Positions 12,801 through 21,800 of a stretch of DNA of 64,000 nt are shown piece by piece. Under the pieces are notes generated by a model, which was given only the letters and a program-made list of their open reading frames with translations, searched no databases and was not told the DNA's origin. The position numbers and the translations under genes are program-made. The stretch spans positions 36,952,001 to 37,016,000 of the forward strand of contig CM119372.1 of the NCBI GenBank assembly GCA_051294905.1, given 5' to 3'. How positions within the stretch are numbered: the stretch's first letter is position 1; each line of letters begins with the position of its first letter. The DNA is from Botryllus schlosseri (Eukaryota).

Positions 12801-15800
12801 TATGTGGTGATTGAAAGGTAATCAAGTGCAAAGCGTTTTTTCCGCCCCTCAATCTGTCACATACTGACCCTCACATAAAGCAGTTGTGGCCAAACTTTTC
12901 GGCCAAAGGACCATAACATTTTTTTCGAACCATTGCGCTGGCCACTTGAGTATTGAAAACCCCTTTTAGAAGTCCGATATAAGCTAGTCGGAACAAGTAA
13001 CGATGGATGAATGACTTGTCTTACTACGGTCCAGACCCGAATTCATGTGACGACATTTATGTGATGAAAAATAAGGGTGTAGCAGACATGGGGTGATTAC
13101 TTCATGAATGTAATCGATTGCGATTACGATTACTTCTGAATAACGCGATTACGATTACGATTACGATTACAGCAAAATCAGGACGTAGTCGATTACGATT
13201 ACGATTACATTGGAAAAGTAATCACGATTACTTCTTAGAACTAATATTAGAAGATATATTGGAGACAATATGAGGATTGCGCTGAAAAGGTCTAATGAGA
13301 TGACAACTTTCTTGAAAAATGATGCGTCATTAGCTTGTTACGTCATAATGTACCCATTGCCCATTTTTATAGAGGACGGTTTATCGCACTCGCGATTTGC
13401 ATTCATGCCAGGTCCGTAACTGCCGCATCCTAGATTACCCAATAGTGTGGGGAGAGAGCTCTAAGGGGAATAAAAAGTATTTAGTAAAACCAACATAAAT
13501 TCTAGAGTATTTTCAAGAGATTTATTTAACATGAAAATTTTCTTCGAGCTTCGAGATTTAAATGTCTTTAGATATCTTGATTTTGAAATGTATACGTCTT
13601 CCCATCATGAAAAAAGCATGTCCAATTTATAGGAATAGGTGTTTCGGTGCCGGTCATTACCGCGCCACCACATACCAAAATACATGTGCAGTTTCGGCCA
13701 ACATGCGACTCCACAAAGTCAATAGCCGCGCTGGGTGGGCGAGACTAATAGCCCTGTCCTTCCAATCTAAGCCTACAATGCAGATGCCACCCGTGGCAGC
13801 CAAAGACAATTAAAGACATGACTATTCGTGTGTGCCTCTCACGAAGGTTTTTCTTTTAGTCTGCTACGTTTGGGCGACTGCAATATATTCTGATTACATA
13901 ACAGAGCGGAAGTCACGAAATAAAACATGCACTGAAGTACTTATAACAAAATACCAGATGTTGTAATTATGAATTATGTGCCACCAGCTCTACAGGTAAA
14001 TCTGACCATCGGGGGCTGAGAGCGGATTAAAAAGGAATAGTAATATTATGCAATTACCAATATTATTACCGAAATTCGGTCTTCAACTTGAAAATTGACA
14101 GCCCTCTTGGGGGACCAAACCAACGTTTGGAGTGGGGGACGAATTTCTGTTATTGTCCTGATTCTGGCTGCAACCCACGCTAACATGGCATATAGGCGGA
14201 TGACTATGGCGGCAGGTCCAAATGTTGAGTAAAGAATTGTGAAATAACGATTGGCGCCCGTTTCAAGTAAAGTCATATGGGAATAAGGGAAAGCGAGTGG
14301 CGTAGTTGGTTAAGCACCAGCGTCACGACACCAATGGTCGTGGTACGAATCCCGGTTCGGACTAACTTCTATGTGTCGGAGGTTATATGGGCTCCTCATC
14401 GCCGACCTCACTGCAATTGCGGTGACTTAAAAAGCCCAGATACGACTGTGGGTCGAGCTATAAGTCGACGGTAAAGGAAGATCCGAATAAAAAAAACTTG
14501 AAGCTGCAAAGACTGCGAGCGCACGAGCAATGAGCGCGAAGAAATGACATTGAACTGTGTTATAAAAATGTGATGTCGTGGAGCACAAAGCCCTAATCGG
14601 GCTATAAGCACCACTGTTGTATGTTGCATAATAATAATAATAATAATAATTTGGTTGTATTAAGAATTAATTAATAATTAATTAATTACTTTAACTTAAC
14701 CTAACTTCTGAACTGACGCATCACTGCTGTGAATGCCTGCGAAACGATCTGGATATATCGCACCTGGACGTACCCGCCGTGGGACCAAGCGGATGACCCC
14801 AGAGGACTCGTCAACTCCGACCACACAGGAACACCAAAGAGAAGATATTTCTCAACATGGCGCCTGTGCAACACCGAACTGTGGCTCACAAAACAGCTCT
14901 GCTGCAAAAGAAAAAAAGAAGAGACACAGATGGAGTAAAGAAGAGTATAAAGAAATAATGAGATGTTACTTCTTAGCCAAATTTGAAAACTCGGCAGGAG
15001 TAACCGAAGGAACTTTTCAAAAATGGAAAGAGAGAACGAACAACTCTCCAACCATGACTGCCAATACCCTGGCAACAATGAGACGTTGTGTAATAAAAAA
15101 TAAAAAATTATCTGAACAAGAACTCGCAGAAATCGAGGGAGAAATGTGTAACAAAAACATAGAAAACTCTGAGGCTTTGGAACTGCAATTCGGCCAAGAT
15201 GACCTGAACCCACAACAATCACTTGATGACCCGAACATCGCAGAAGTAGAATTACAAAATACCACCGGGCACCCGAATGAATCAATAACACCTAACGATG
15301 GCGACATAGACACGGAATTAGAATTGGAGATCAAAAATCAAATCATCGACCGCATGAAATCCACATTGAATGTAAATGACAGAGTGCAGTTACCTGACTT
15401 ACAAATTACAAAGAAACTGAAAACTGATATTGCAGTAGCGAACAAAATTTTGACAGAAACCATACTGCCTGCAACTCTAAATGACAAACAAGGAGAAAGA
15501 CCACAATGTCCCTTGACAACAATCAACAACCTCATTTACAGCACTGCGGCAGTTATCTCAGAAAGGCACTGCAAAATACCAAGAACTGTCAACAAAAAAA
15601 GGGGAAGGCATACGCCAGCTTGGCAACGCAGAATTGAAAACAAAATCGCAAAACTAAGGTATGACGTTGCGATACTCTCAGAACTAAAAAAAGGAAATGT
15701 TTCCCGCAAAGTAAAAAATAAAGTAAAAAGAATAGAACTGGAGCACCAAACCAAACTGCAGTCAACAGAAAAAGTGACAATGTTGCAAGAAGAATTAAAA

Positions 15801-18800
15801 ATGAGAATATGCGCCAAAGCACAACGATTGAAACGATATAAAAAACGAGAAACACAATATCGCCAAAATTTGTTATTTGCTCGCAAACCTGGACAATTTT
15901 TTCGAATGATGAAACAAAAGTCAAATCAAAAAATTACCAGCAGCAAAATACCAGCCACTGCAGATGTGGAATCATTTTGGAAGAAAATATGGGAAACCAA
16001 AAAATTGCACAACTCAAATGCAAATTGGATACAAGACCTCCACACTGACCATCTACAAACACCAGAACAACAATGGTCAGAAATCACAAAACAAGAAATC
16101 AAGGAGGCCCTAAAGAGTTCACTGAACTGGAAAGCAGCCGGTCCTGACCAGATCAAAAACTTTTGGCTAAAAAAACTAACTGCAACACATAATTACCTAG
16201 CGGTGACCTACAATGAGCTTTTATCCTCAACCAGCTCGCACGAGATCCCAGCCTGGTTCACACAAGGGATCACCTATCTTATTCCAAAAAATGAAAACAC
16301 CAGGGACCCCAAGAACTACAGGCCAATAACATGCCTGACAACCATGTACAAAACACTGACCAAAATCCTGGCAAAACGAAGCTACAAACACCTAGAAAAT
16401 CTTCTACCGCCTGAGCAGAAAGGATGCAAGGAAGGCGCCCTTGGCTGTAAGGACCACCTGCTCCTTGACAAAACCATTCTTGAAAACTGCAAGAGGAGAC
16501 ATACTAACCTCAGCATGGCATGGATAGATTACAAAAAAGCTTTCGATTCAGTCCCTCACACGTGGATACTGAAAACAATGCGTATGTACAAAATGAATCC
16601 GATCATCATCAGATTTATTGAAAATTCAATGAAAAATTGGCATACAAAACTGTTGATCAAACATGACCAAGGTGAAACAGAAACCTGTACAATTCAGATA
16701 TGCAATGGTATCTTCCAAGGCGACTCATTCTCACCACTTCTATTCTGCCTCAGCTTAGCTCCACTCAGTGAGTTGCTGAGAAAAAATGAAACAGGATACG
16801 TGATGAAAAAAGCAGCAAATTCTGAAGGTCAAAAGATTCATCACCTTTTGTTCATGGATGATCTGAAACTGTATGCGAAATCCGACACGGACCTGAATAA
16901 CCAAATGAAAATTGTTCATGAGTTTTCGGAAGATATAAAAATGAAATTTGGCTTGGATAAATGCTCAAAACTTACCATACGACGCGGAAGAGCCACCAGC
17001 ACTGGCGACATGAACTTCAAAATGGACGAAACCATAACAGAATTGAATGCCGAAGATCACTATAAATATCTAGGGATCTGTGAAAGCGACAACATTAAAC
17101 ATGCTGCAATGAAATCAAGTCTAAAAAAAGAATACATCAGCAGGCTCAAGTCAATTCTCAAAACTGAACTCAATTCCAAAAACAAAATCAATGCCATAAA
17201 CAGTCTTGCAGTGCCTGTCTTGAGATATAGCTTTGGTGTGGTGAACTGGCGTAAAGATGAAATTAAAAAATTGGACACAAAGACGAGAAAACTGATGACA
17301 ATGCACCACATGCATCACCCAAAATCTGATACACAAAGACTGTACATCCCCAGAAAAAAAGGTGGTCGAGGACTACAAGAAATTGAACAAACCTTCAAAA
17401 CAGAAATCATCGGCTTGTCACAGTACATCAACAACAGCGATAACATTTACTGCAAACTCATTGCACAGGAAGACAAACAGCGCAAAACAAAATCTCTGAG
17501 CTATCGTCACGACAAGTACGCCAGAGAAGTCAACTTGGAAACAGCTAACCTGTACACTGCAGAAAACACTGTTGCTAAACCCACAACAATAGCAAAAGCA
17601 GCACGAGTCCGATACAAAAATGCAACGCTCAAAATGAGAGAAACGATATGGGAGTCGATGCCTCTTCATGGACAGCACAAGAAGTTAACTTCACAGCCCC
17701 ATGTAGACGAGCTTTCATGGACCTGGCTATCCAGCTCTGGCCTGAAACCGGCAAGCGAAGGATTCATTTTCGCAGCACAAGACCAATCGCTTCCTACAAA
17801 ATACTATCGCAAAAGAATTCTGAAGCAAAACACGGACGGCAAATGCAGAATGTGCCACAACCAAAATGAAACTGTAGCACATCTCATGTCCGGCTGTGGT
17901 GCACTTGCAGCTACCGAATACACATGGAGACACAATAGGATTGGTCACTACATTCATCTTGAATTATGCAAACATTTTAACATCACCACTTCGACAAAAA
18001 ATTGGTACGATTACAGCCCAGCACCAGTGACAGAAAACGAACAAGTAAAAATTCTGTGGGATGTACCAGTTATAACTGACCGCGAAATCAGGAGCAACCG
18101 CCCGGATATAATCGTCAAACTAAAAAAGAAAAGAGAATGCTTATTCATTGAACTGGCTGTCCCAGCTGATCACAACCTACTGCAAAAAGAATCAGAAAAA
18201 TACTCCAAATACGCAGACCTCAAAATGGAATGTGAGAAAATGTGGCGATGCAAAATAAACATTGTACCGATAGTCATTGGTGCTACAGGGGTCGTGAGCA
18301 AAAAACTCATGAGACATATCCAACAAATTCCGGGTAACGTTCGATTCGACATGATCCAAAAGATCACATTATTGGGCACTGTGCACATTCTTCGGAAGGC
18401 CCTGAATGCACCACTGGACTAAAATTACACTTGTGAATCACAGCATAATTTCTGTAATTTCGATTCTTCATCTTCAATCATCTCTACCTCTGCTCTGTAA
18501 CCCTTGCCAATTCTTCATCTGCTGCAATTCTGTAATCTGACTTCTCCGTGTATTGCATAGGAATAACAATTTGAATGTATTACTGAAATTTTAAAAATTT
18601 ACTCCAATCTCGCCATTTTCCTTTGGGGGCAGGTTGCTCCCCGGATTATGTGTGTATCTACCAGTTTTACTGTGAATAAAGAGAATAATAATAATATGGG
18701 AATAAGCTAAAGTGAACATAAAATTATGCCTTCAACTTAATACAGATACTGCAAGAACTGCTCGGTAATGACATATATCAGTAGCTGTTGGTTTTTAATG

Positions 18801-21800
18801 CTTCGTTGTGGAAACTGTAAGGTTTTATTTGACGAGTACAAAATATAAAATCTTTGCCCGGTGTACGTACGTACTATGGGCCTACTGCTCGCCAAGCAGC
18901 AGCGGGCAAACTACGTTTAACTGAGCATAACCAAACATCAATACATAAGTTACTATTTGAAACTAAGCAGAGTGGTGATAAATTATCCTGCTGAGAAGTA
19001 GTAGCGTTTCGAGTGTATTGAAAACCTGATATAGAGCACGGTTGGTGTTCTTACTATCACACTACAATGAACATCTAATATCTATTTACAATATGTGGAT
19101 ACTTCTTACGCAATAACCAGCAAAGCTAATACTTCTGACGAAATAATGAGCAGTGAAGTTTGAAAATCAGACGTTCATGCTATCACTAACCAGGTATAAT
19201 ATATCTTCGTGTACGAATCAGTAGGCTATCTGTCATAGTCATTGTACGAATAAAAAGTAATCGTTCTTTCACAAAGAAATCGATTAGATATGGGAAGTAG
19301 TCGATTACGATTACGATTACTTCGTAATTTTTTCAAATGTAATCGATTGCGATTACGATTACTTGAAAATGCTGTAATCGTCGTAATCGATTACGGTTAC
19401 TAATCGCGATTACCCCATGTCTGGTGTGTAGACTGTAGAAAGCGAAAATGTTTCAAAATTGGCCAATGAATTCTGTCAATGAATATTGACACTTGCATAT
19501 GTAGCATATATTGTGGGTTATAAATGTGGCACGGTTAATAAAAACTACCACAGAAAACTTTGTAGTTGTATCAAGGCTGTGGAATCAGTAAATTTTAAAA
19601 GCGACTCGTACTCCAGACATTTTCAATAAACAGATCCAACTCTAGAGTCTTTAAACGTACCGACTCCGGTTCCGACTCTTACTGTTTTCCTCACAGAACT
19701 CCGACTCCGACTCCAATAGTACTTCAAATTTACTTCGAAAATTATACGACCCGGTGACGGTGAAATGACTTCCATATATATCTATTCAACATATGTAAAC
19801 ATATTATTCACGATGTATATATGGCTCATCAAAACGTTCGAAACTGATGTTTCGCAATCTAGCATTTACGTATCATATCGTGATCTAGCATGTCCATGTG
19901 CATGGCGTGTCTTAATCCGGAAAAGTGAAGTCTGACTTTTTTATTTTTAAAGACGTTATAGCATACCACCTTTGAAACTTTCAGGACTGAAGACATGAAA
20001 TACATGTTCCGCTTTTAGAAGTAGTATTTATATTTCGCTTTCAATTGCCAGTATCAAATACTTTGAGTTCCAATTAATATCAGTTCTTTTGTCTCGATAA
20101 CATACATGTTGAAGTATAAAAGCAAGTGTATGACTTTAATTTCCGAAAATAAAGATACACAATATGGCATTTTTACGGTCCACCATTTTTTTATTAACGT
20201 TTACTAATCGCGCAAAGTGCTTACACCGTATCCCATACAACTTCTCCGCATTGCTCTTCGACTAAACTACGGGTCTTATATTATGGGGAGGGCACCGTAC
20301 CATGATATTTTCTAAAGCGTGCTGTTCGAGAAAACAGAGGATTAGTATCGCATTTTTAAACCAATATTACCATTTTCATCCCATGAGGCGGACGAATGCT
20401 TATGCTGTCGAAAATTGGATACCTCCTGGTATGCATCAATATGAATCAAGCTCGGCAGCTTTCGCATAGCTCAATTTGTACCTTTTGACTATCCATGTGA
20501 TCGAATCCTGATCGTTTTGACAACTACTTACTTACTTGAGTAGATTTAAAGTCAGTTAATTCTACTTCTAATTGAAATAGATTTAGGTTGCATATGGATG
20601 AAGTACTTCCACTCGTACATGAGTAGATTTTTATGTCGCTACTTCTACTTCTACTTGACTAGCTTTTTTGACTACTTTGACCACATCTGAAAATAACATA
20701 TATCTACTCGACATGCACTTAGTCAAGTATTCATGGCTAGGACTATTGCACCCTTTCCTAAACATTTTTTCGACCCATGTGGCTGAGCTACTTACCAGAC
20801 ATATTTTCGATTTTGTCAAATGGGAAGCAGTGTTTGGTCATATTATTTTTTGTCAAGTGGGAAGCAGTGTTTGGTTTTATTTTATTCAAAGTGATGTTAT
20901 CACTTACAAAACAAGAAGATGTATTTACTGTTTCATAATATCGTGGTATAATTCCAAAAATTGAACCAATTTGTGACTGCATCTATAATTTTGTGTTGGT
21001 CTCGATTTGGTTGAAATGTTTTCCTCTAAGCAATTGAATTACAATTGGCAATAAATGTCCAGTTTCATCAATATGGCTACTAAGACCTGTTATTGTTGGT
21101 ACATACAAACCCAATTTTGTTTAATATATGTCATTTTAAGAGAACTTTGAAAGCACTTGTTTTCATATTGACGAAGTTGGAGTCGGAGTCGAGAGTATTT
21201 TCACAAACACCGACTCCAAGGGTTGCTAAAAATAGACTCCGACTCCGAGTCCAACAAGTTAAAATAAGCGAAACTTCGACTCCGACTCCACAGCCTTGGA
21301 CTTGCATCTATTTGCCACGAAAGTCTTATTAAAAAGAAACTTACATAGCTTTATGAAAAATGTCGAATGAACGGGGGCATGGCCCCTCTTGGTTCAACAA
21401 TGCATCTAAACTGTTTTATATTAGTCATTAACATTCTAAATTTGGTGGTCAGGCTAATCACAACAAATTATGTGGGTATTCATTTCTGATACTGTAACTT
21501 CGTTCAAAAATGAATGTGCGGGCTGTGGGTTGCAGAGGTGGTCAGTAACGAAGTACTTCTACTTTTTCGAAGTACTCAAGTAGTTTTCCTCTACTTCTGG
21601 TACTTACTCAAGTAGATCTGATTTTCGCTACTTCTACTTTTACTTCGTAATATTTTGTGATCTACTTACTTACTTTTCGCTATTTTCAGTTTGTCAAGTA
21701 GAAGTAGGTCAATCTTCTAATCAGAAAGATAGCCTGAGGAATTTCGGGGCTGTTTTCATGGAGTATCAACATTTAATTTTCATAAAAGTTGAGTAAAGCC

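Follow-up and report, generated by a model that had tools for sequence, protein, structure and literature searches.

We analysed a stretch of 64,000 nucleotides (nt) from the ascidian Botryllus schlosseri (GenBank assembly GCA_051294905.1, contig CM119372.1, positions 36,952,001 to 37,016,000 of the forward strand), which we call the window and number from its first letter. Between positions 14650 and 18696 on its forward strand, the window very probably contains an intact copy of a young, autonomous family of Dong-type retrotransposons that arose from a trans-spliced RNA template, is targeted to (TAA)n microsatellites, and carries a conserved hairpin near its 3′ end. The Dong element of Bombyx mori was reportedly described by Xiong and Eickbush in 1993. 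A sequence-only reading of the window had described a full-length element at 14651-18695 with both of its untranslated regions (UTRs) present; the full length stands, whereas the start must be moved to 14650 and the initial 15 nt assigned to the host, whose spliced leader (SL) they are.

An unbroken open reading frame (ORF) runs from 14733 to 18422 on the forward strand, encoding 1229 amino acids plus a stop with no internal stops or frameshifts. The sequence-only claim of an intact 3690-nt frame with reverse transcriptase (RT), CCHC, and restriction-like endonuclease (RLE) motifs was borne out by Pfam matches, conserved alignment columns, and a structural model. A whole-genome DNA search returned 25 full-length copies at 96-100% identity, plus many truncated ones. 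The full-length copies divide into subfamily A, with a 1229-aa ORF and a mean pairwise difference of 0.72%, and subfamily B, with a 1226-aa ORF and a mean pairwise difference of 1.1%. The two subfamilies are 3.6% apart, individual pairs of copies differ by as little as 0.2-0.4%, and an ORF of 1226-1229 aa has been kept in 13 of the 25. The ratio of nonsynonymous to synonymous substitution rates (dN/dS) between the subfamilies is 0.21, which indicates that the source lineages were selected for a working protein. The low divergence, the purifying selection, and the share of open frames agree with the earlier suggestion that this is a young copy, and the genome-wide search found the family to be multi-copy, little diverged, and mostly abutting (TAA)n.

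The spliced leader at the 5′ end

The first 15 nt of the copy (14650-14664, forward strand) match exactly the 3′ part of the 25-nt leader of stolidobranch ascidians and are the sole leader match in the window. The 24-25 nt that head other full-length copies are this same published leader, which is listed for Botryllus schlosseri, Halocynthia roretzi, Polyandrocarpa misakiensis, Styela plicata, and others (PMC3795323, Table 1 and supplementary files 2 and 3). Raw RNA reads with the full leader behind the template-switch oligonucleotide show that it is in use in this organism. Between the target and the element body, 15-25 nt of the leader are present in 17 of the 25 full-length copies and a few nt in two more; copies that are 5′-truncated further in have none. 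Downstream of the leader in the window lies an AT-rich 5′ UTR body of 68 nt (14665-14732, forward strand) that is common to all 5′-complete copies. Every leader-bearing full-length copy joins the leader to this AT-rich body at the exact end of the leader exon, with no GT and no letters of the leader intron. Because the body of the element follows at the exact exon end, these genomic junctions show that the captured RNA template had been SL trans-spliced. Insertion into a leader gene was considered and rejected, since it is the element body, not the GT of the leader gene, that follows the leader.

Dinoflagellate retrogenes are reportedly marked in a comparable way: a DNA-encoded leader betrays a retroposed trans-spliced RNA (PMC12014239, PMC6050394), and stacked partial relics record repeated rounds of trans-splicing and retroposition (PMC12014239). 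The RNAs copied there are reportedly host mRNAs, whereas here it is the RNA of a retrotransposon itself, in a chordate. Partial leader relics lie directly behind a full leader in two copies of the Botryllus element (L006 and L019) and in two unrelated leader-headed repeats (L039 and L048). Copy L019 also has, at 1030-1520, a local duplication of ~385 nt ahead of the full-length copy, in which the upstream flank, the leader plus relic, and the initial ~110 nt of the element appear a second time.

A mini-copy of 90 nt (L014, C16:13534000-13534100) consists of the full 25-nt leader followed by the last 65 nt of the 3′ UTR and a tail. Its leader is joined right after an internal CAG. The mini-copy occupies a TAA tract, and its own tail has received a full-length copy. 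No further leader-plus-65-nt mini-copies were found elsewhere in the genome, and the idea that such copies form a natural deletion series was abandoned, this being a single event and an anecdote. The mini-copy junction and the leader relics are both consistent with repeated trans-splicing, and it is possible that the mini-copy junction arose by a template switch at a five-base microhomology.

Judging from these sequences, there is a roughly even chance that the leader would be renewed in each cycle by trans-splicing. We tentatively propose, at a little under an even chance, a promoter-less, self-healing long interspersed nuclear element (LINE) that would have given up its ribozyme and would have its capped 5′ end restored every cycle by the trans-splicing machinery of the host. 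With or without such renewal, the element would most likely be transcribed within longer host transcripts, and trans-splicing at its 5′ edge would then yield a capped RNA with a defined end, in place of ribozyme cleavage. Under the renewal proposal, copies in transcribed DNA would be spliced at the AG of their own DNA-encoded leader, and a fresh capped leader would allow a complete 5′ end to be regained even after small 5′ truncations.

The self-cleaving alternative is known from close quarters: in Bombyx Dong and Ascaris R4, a 5′ ribozyme resembling that of hepatitis delta virus (HDV) cleaves the co-transcript at the junction (PMC3774820). The Botryllus element differs from Bombyx Dong in having the host leader at its 5′ end and in lacking an HDV-like ribozyme detectable with Rfam. 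No Rfam family, whether ribozyme or not, matched at E ≤ 1 in 14200-19000, although Rfam models can miss HDV-like ribozymes, and the scan yielded only a chance match to a bacterial small RNA, far below the family threshold. The first 200 nt of the element are not unusually structured (fold z −1.39). R4 would share with the Botryllus element a 5′ end set by RNA processing of a co-transcript, as we propose here; R4, however, combines a 28S ribosomal DNA (rDNA) target with a ribozyme, and the window element a microsatellite target with a spliced leader. None of 80 related loci from metagenomes carries the leader. No description of leader-headed LINEs in tunicates was found in the literature searched, which is no proof of absence.

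The principal rival to renewal, to which we give an appreciable but minor probability, holds that the leader is a fossil, captured once, and that an internal promoter starts at or near its first base with no trans-splicing at present. Internal promoters that fire at +1 are common among LINEs, and the junction with the leader is the same in the two subfamilies, which is what one ancient capture would have left. The sequence of the leader, however, ends in AG behind a U-rich run, so that any read-through transcript carries a usable acceptor at this junction; partial relics are stacked behind full leaders, in unrelated repeats as well; the leader of the mini-copy is joined after an internal CAG; and an AT-rich 5′ UTR of 68 nt leaves little room for a promoter. 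Several points nonetheless count against our reading of the 5′ end. RNA read mapping, which left out the repeat-rich 5′ junction (14620-14694), returned no read of a fresh addition and none joining the leader to the sense element; HDV-like ribozymes are hard to detect with Rfam models, and their absence is not proven; and, on sequence alone, the leader may have been captured once and inherited as DNA instead of being added anew in each cycle. That the RT attached the leader by jumping onto leader RNA is very improbable, for although R2-type RTs do jump between templates, small duplications occur at the 5′ junctions of L002 and L008, and the mini-copy junction shares AGGTT with the exon-intron border at leader-GT sites, copying from the 3′ end of an acceptor RNA would bring in the leader intron, of which the full-length junctions have no letters.

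The leader is found well beyond this family. A 17-nt piece of it occurs 423 times in the genome, and unrelated sequences follow it in 20 sampled places (C1, L031-L050). Two of these (L034 and L040) head coiled-coil ORFs resembling LINE ORF1; three (L035, L041, and L046) represent one further repeat; and seven (L036, L038, L042-L045, and L048) are conserved on both sides of the leader, followed by a small ORF resembling a membrane protein. GT stands directly after the leader in 12 of the 20, and some of these sites may represent leader genes, or elements that have inserted into the donor site of such genes.

The hairpin in the 3′ untranslated region

The 3′ UTR (18423-18683, forward strand, 261 nt) contains a stem-loop motif of 33 nt at 18617-18649 (forward strand). 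Its inner stem (18625-18641) has seven base pairs (bp), a 3-nt loop, and the 5′ arm GGGGGCA, and is enclosed by an outer CC/GG helix across a small internal loop. The sequence-only reading had pointed to a hairpin at about 18625-18642, ~40 nt before the tail, and had proposed it as an RNA signal. Fold energy is of no help here: z is +0.80 for the 3′ UTR and −0.93 for its last 98 nt, neither better than shuffled sequence. We therefore dropped folding energy as evidence, and the significance of the hairpin rests on comparison with relatives.

Within the window family the motif is nearly invariant. Low divergence of the 3′ UTR between the subfamilies was rejected as a sign of constraint, since the whole last 1 kb, coding sequence included, differs by only ~1%. 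The short 3′ UTRs of relatives contain a hairpin that matches it in size and surroundings, with a consistent order of parts: a CC-pyrimidine-U-A lead-in, a stem of 6-7 bp whose first bases are usually GG, a loop rich in G, and, behind the stem, CGG or GG. The 5′ arms vary among relatives (GGCTACT, GGTCGC, AGTCCA), and each has a matching 3′ arm.

Across 15 sequences, 87.6% of the alignment cells are paired, against 55% in shuffled alignments (0 of 500 shuffles reach the observed value), and the covariation score is 0.954, against 0.283 when shuffled and 0.05-0.24 with the pairing partners slid. This 15-sequence alignment is ungapped, and all seven pairs in it have changed on both sides. A set of 31 distinct sequences gave much the same picture, with 92.5% of cells paired against 62% shuffled and covariation of 0.787 against 0.231 shuffled and 0.06-0.18 slid. 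RNAalifold predicted the inner stem independently, together with an outer helix of four pairs across the small internal loop. The aligned sequences were chosen by a hairpin search, which favors pairing, and a covariance model provides the less biased test. Run over the 80 related loci (343 kb) on both strands, the model (R1) returned 34 hits at E ≤ 1, of which 33 lie on the ORF strand; 18 of the 34 were not in the seed, some have new stems, and the hits lie a median of 42 nt before the (TAA)n tail. Its only hit in the 64-kb window is the hairpin described here (E 1.8e-5), 35 nt before the tail.

On this comparative evidence, the hairpin is a conserved structured element of Dong-type 3′ UTRs; with covarying stems and a fixed distance to the tail, the earlier proposal of an RNA signal is strongly supported as far as structure is concerned. 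By analogy with R2 and with LINEs that depend on a stem-loop, it would most likely be the mark by which the protein picks out its own RNA. The R2 protein recognizes the RNA of its 3′ UTR, and the hairpin may be the counterpart of that signal. In "stringent" LINEs such as UnaL2 of the eel, which belongs to the L2 clade and has an apurinic/apyrimidinic endonuclease (APE), recognition of the 3′ stem-loop was shown by assay. UnaL2 resembles the window element in that a short hairpin, conserved in the structure of its stem and not in the sequence, precedes the simple-repeat tail at the 3′ end; unlike that of UnaL2, the present hairpin is known from covariation and position. The mini-copy argues in the opposite direction from a strict requirement, having inserted without the 5′ arm of the hairpin, albeit as a single event. 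No description of a 3′ stem-loop in Dong was found in the literature searched, which does not prove that none exists.

Six relatives (L067, L082, L086, L087, L104, and L124) have a 7-bp stem with a constant GGGAU loop, and L053 has the same loop on another stem; judging by their accession series, the contigs of the six presumably come from termite-gut metagenomes.

Protein, relatives, and landing site

The RT domain occupies 16281-17078 (forward strand; residues 517-782; Pfam RVT_1, E 3e-30), with FMDD at residues 707-710. Residues 401-924 can be aligned with R2 proteins in the PDB, which are the nearest solved structures. Downstream of the RT lie a CCHC zinc knuckle (17844-17897, forward strand; C1038, C1041, H1050, and C1055, with a conserved R between the first two cysteines) and a restriction-like PD-(D/E)xK endonuclease (17928-18212, forward strand; RH at 1066-1067, RPD at 1123-1125, E1140, and lysines at 1152-1160). 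In an alignment of 58 relatives, the columns of the knuckle and of the RH, RPD, acidic 1140, and lysine motifs are invariant or nearly so; the Pfam matches in these regions, zf-RVT for the knuckle and L_protein_N for the endonuclease, are weak. An AlphaFold model of the C-terminal 300 aa, with a predicted local distance difference test score (pLDDT) of 94, fits the linker, knuckle, and endonuclease part of R2 (TM 0.65, E 2e-9) in structures of proteins caught in target-primed reverse transcription, and the next-ranked matches are the cap-snatching PD-(D/E)xK endonucleases of bunyaviruses. The protein is encoded by a single ORF in the order RT, CCHC, C-terminal endonuclease, and has no APE domain. 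This architecture and the fit of the model to the R2 endonuclease part uphold the earlier assignment to the RLE-type LINEs. By analogy with R2, the endonuclease would nick the TAA tract, the UAA-type end of the RNA would anneal there, and the RT would copy the RNA by target-primed reverse transcription.

Near the N terminus, a helical domain resembling Myb/SANT (14922-15107, forward strand; residues 64-125) is a candidate DNA-binding module. R64, W67, W98, L113, R117, R118, and I120 are nearly invariant among 56 relatives, and the AlphaFold model of the domain has four helices (pLDDT 86). Its best fold matches are DNA-binding domains of the Myb, SANT, and helix-turn-helix types, among them Sap1, TRF, Zeste, GT-1, and the SANT domain of DMAP1, with Z scores of only 5-6, which are not decisive, and a Foldseek search with the same model gave no significant row (E-values ~4). 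Pfam found no family in the N-terminal 300 aa, nor any zinc-finger family at E ≤ 10, and no C2H2 pattern was seen in the ORF translation.

A protein search with residues 500-1229 (the first 500 are poorly conserved, and words from them yielded 21 relatives) matched 1950 proteins at E ≤ 1e-20. Over their whole length the best of these reach 41-45% identity, and in the RT-endonuclease part up to 50%, so there is no close relative among them. Most are unnamed proteins from marine and insect-gut metagenomes, a few come from shrimp, beetles, and a butterfly, and the ESM Atlas returned only unnamed RVT_1 clusters. We took the 80 related loci from metagenome contigs, 63 of them with an ORF that reaches its stop; (TAA)n follows within 300 nt of the stop in 36 of the 63, usually after 50-150 nt. 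A tree of the C-terminal region, built from 28 rows with loci omitted if they had stops in the match or fewer than 200 aa, places the window protein in a supported clade (96/89) of 11 rows; among the ten rows besides the window protein, seven have TAA tails. In two relatives (P0010 and P0124, 1357-1403 aa), an OTU cysteine-protease domain (PF02338) accompanies the RT.

In the literature, proteins of the R4/Dong clade are described as having a diverged Myb/SANT domain at the N terminus but lacking zinc fingers, and (TAA)n is the insertion site of Dong in most insects, molluscs, and cnidarians, with a crustacean Dong also known (PMC7998251). Like Bombyx Dong and the Dong-like elements of insects, molluscs, cnidarians, and the ostracod Darwinula (PMC7998251), the window element has a single ORF, the order RT-CCHC-endonuclease, a (TAA)n target, and a TAA-type tail; its N-terminal region without zinc fingers would be a further likeness, given fold matches at Z 5-6. 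It differs from these relatives in its tunicate host; the nearest proteins found share at most 50% identity with it in the RT-endonuclease part, and its 3′ UTR of 261 nt compares with 50-150 nt in most relatives. The R4 elements of Ascaris and other nematodes belong, by the literature, to the same clade and have the same domain order. R2 (R2Bm and R2Tg; 8gh6, 9dou, and 9nl2-4) provides the best sequence and fold matches in the PDB and shares RLE-type target-primed reverse transcription. R2, however, has N-terminal zinc fingers plus Myb and a 28S rDNA target, where the window protein has no C2H2 finger and targets (TAA)n, and identity in the superposed C-terminal part is 13-18%.

The Dong-type (R4-clade-like) assignment is thus a probable one that draws on architecture, target, tail, and the literature rather than on a reference RT tree, with partial support from the C-terminal tree, in which most members of its clade have (TAA)n tails. 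A distinctly unlikely alternative is that the element belongs to another RLE clade, HERO or one like the NeSL-related Togen, and gained its (TAA)n specificity independently. Some HERO families and Togen families do target microsatellites (PMC4640811), so that the target alone does not name the clade. The N terminus, however, is without the zinc fingers of R2 and has the W/W/R helical motif reported for R4/Dong (PMC7998251), and (TAA)n tails, the hallmark of Dong in the literature, recur in dozens of relatives that are 35-50% identical. What tells against the Dong name is that the N-terminal fold matches are middling.

The sequence-only claim of TAA on both sides of the element agrees with a 23-nt tract upstream and a 13-nt tail downstream. 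The upstream target tract (14628-14649, forward strand) is a tandem repeat that extends to 14650, with a period of 3 and 7.7 copies at 100% match. It is itself the 3′ tail of a tRNA-derived short interspersed nuclear element (SINE), whose body spans ~14288-14627. Target-site duplications of 10-13 bp at a non-TAA site (14275-14287 and 18694-18706) show the SINE to be the older insertion, with its tail as the landing pad, since its own duplication encloses the element. At the 3′ end, an AATAAA hexamer (18675-18680, forward strand) that reads as a possible polyadenylation signal is found in all copies displayed, and the 13-nt TAA-type tail (18684-18696, forward strand) merges with the rest of the split SINE tail.

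The proposed (TAA)n target held up on copies genome-wide, which lie within (TAA)n and have TAA-type tails at their ends. A tract of at least 14 nt lies directly upstream in 17 of 30 copies examined, several more follow the tail of another copy, and a TAA-type tail of 6-17 nt ends all 30; the few copies with no TAA upstream reflect deletion at the 5′ junction or insertion at other sites. Because a new target arises with each tail, copies can line up head to tail, which accounts for the arrays seen at C14:21432089-21441169, C3:32881915-32889191, and C1:29797401-29801347. The C14 array holds three 5′-complete copies at 4.53-kb spacing, and elsewhere there are runs of 5′-truncated copies, each in the tail of the preceding one.

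At least 6 of the 30 copies (the window copy, L002, L003, L010, L018, and L027) have inserted into tails of one and the same family of tRNA-derived SINEs. This SINE family has a small hairpin of its own ~35-40 nt before its tail, with stems that vary and still pair (GCCC/GGGC, GCCT/AGGC, CCC/GGG). That the Dong element mobilizes the SINE was ruled out by the non-TAA target-site duplication of the SINE and by the lack of a match to the hairpin model.

Activity and significance of the family

The family is large, and few of its copies are complete: genome-wide, there are 76 occurrences of a 21-nt piece from the 3′ part of the 5′ UTR body and 682 of a 22-nt piece beside the tail (reversed controls 0 in both cases), which means that about one copy in nine keeps its 5′ UTR. 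Divergence between the subfamilies is mosaic, reaching ~10% at 15050-15450, after the N-terminal domain, and ~1% at 17650-18695. This suggests recombination between lineages by template switching, or else very uneven rates.

Contigs of runs from ten studies contain 74-80% of the sampled words of the element stretch; none of these runs is recorded as RNA, and several are merely guessed to be RNA. In raw RNA-seq reads (~6% of the run), the element is covered at low depth in both mate orientations, which marks the library as unstranded.

The same reads contain a spliced antisense transcript within the RT-coding region (16598-17077, reverse strand). It starts with the template-switch oligonucleotide and the full spliced leader at a canonical acceptor (cag before 17077), has two GT-AG introns (~16893-16975 and ~16776-16844), and is polyadenylated from near 16598, after AATAAA. 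Its depth is ~20-50 times that of the remaining element, and single-nucleotide polymorphisms indicate that several copies give rise to it. The transcript may be cryptic, or it may supply antisense RNA directed at the element.

We consider it rather unlikely that the family, or the window copy, is no longer mobile, its open frames being young relics and its RNA deriving from read-through or from DNA in the library. Sense coverage in the raw reads is indeed low, and most reads come from the antisense transcript; nor was presence/absence polymorphism seen at the window locus. Against immobility stand copies separated by only 0.2-0.4%, half of the full-length ones open, a dN/dS of 0.2, which shows that the master lineages were under selection until recently, and contigs at least 99% identical to the element in runs filed under two other organism labels. 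Our preferred reading of a young, autonomous family is strained by an unstranded library whose strongest signal is the antisense transcript and by the empty-site allele, which was not seen in the DNA runs searched: no empty-site joint was found there, and no read or contig skips the window insertion.

The window element is a new Dong family in a tunicate, of a known kind, as judged from the literature and not from comparison with Repbase or Dfam; the literature searched contains no description of Dong in tunicates, which is no proof of absence. The sequence-only reading went too far in calling it a candidate new gene-insertion enzyme, (TAA)n-specific Dong being known already (PMC7998251), and was right that the copy is full-length and open. 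Leaving aside the leader and the hairpin, this would be an ordinary new (TAA)n-targeting Dong family.

R2-type site-specific RLE retrotransposons are under development as gene-writing tools (PMC13580325), and the relatives of such tools define which of their parts can vary: the DNA-binding module, the RNA mark, and the way the 5′ end of the RNA is formed. The Botryllus family offers a (TAA)n-specific enzyme of chordate origin that, as far as its sequence tells, appears to be functional. Its 33-nt 3′ RNA motif, which covaries across many animal lineages, is a candidate recognition signal for the whole Dong group. At the other end of the element, a spliced leader heads an RLE-type element whose relatives use a ribozyme, and the route by which promoter-poor LINEs obtain a defined, translatable 5′ end becomes testable in a laboratory ascidian. 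If the proposed renewal of the leader is true, ascidian LINEs in general may be expressed by way of trans-splicing.

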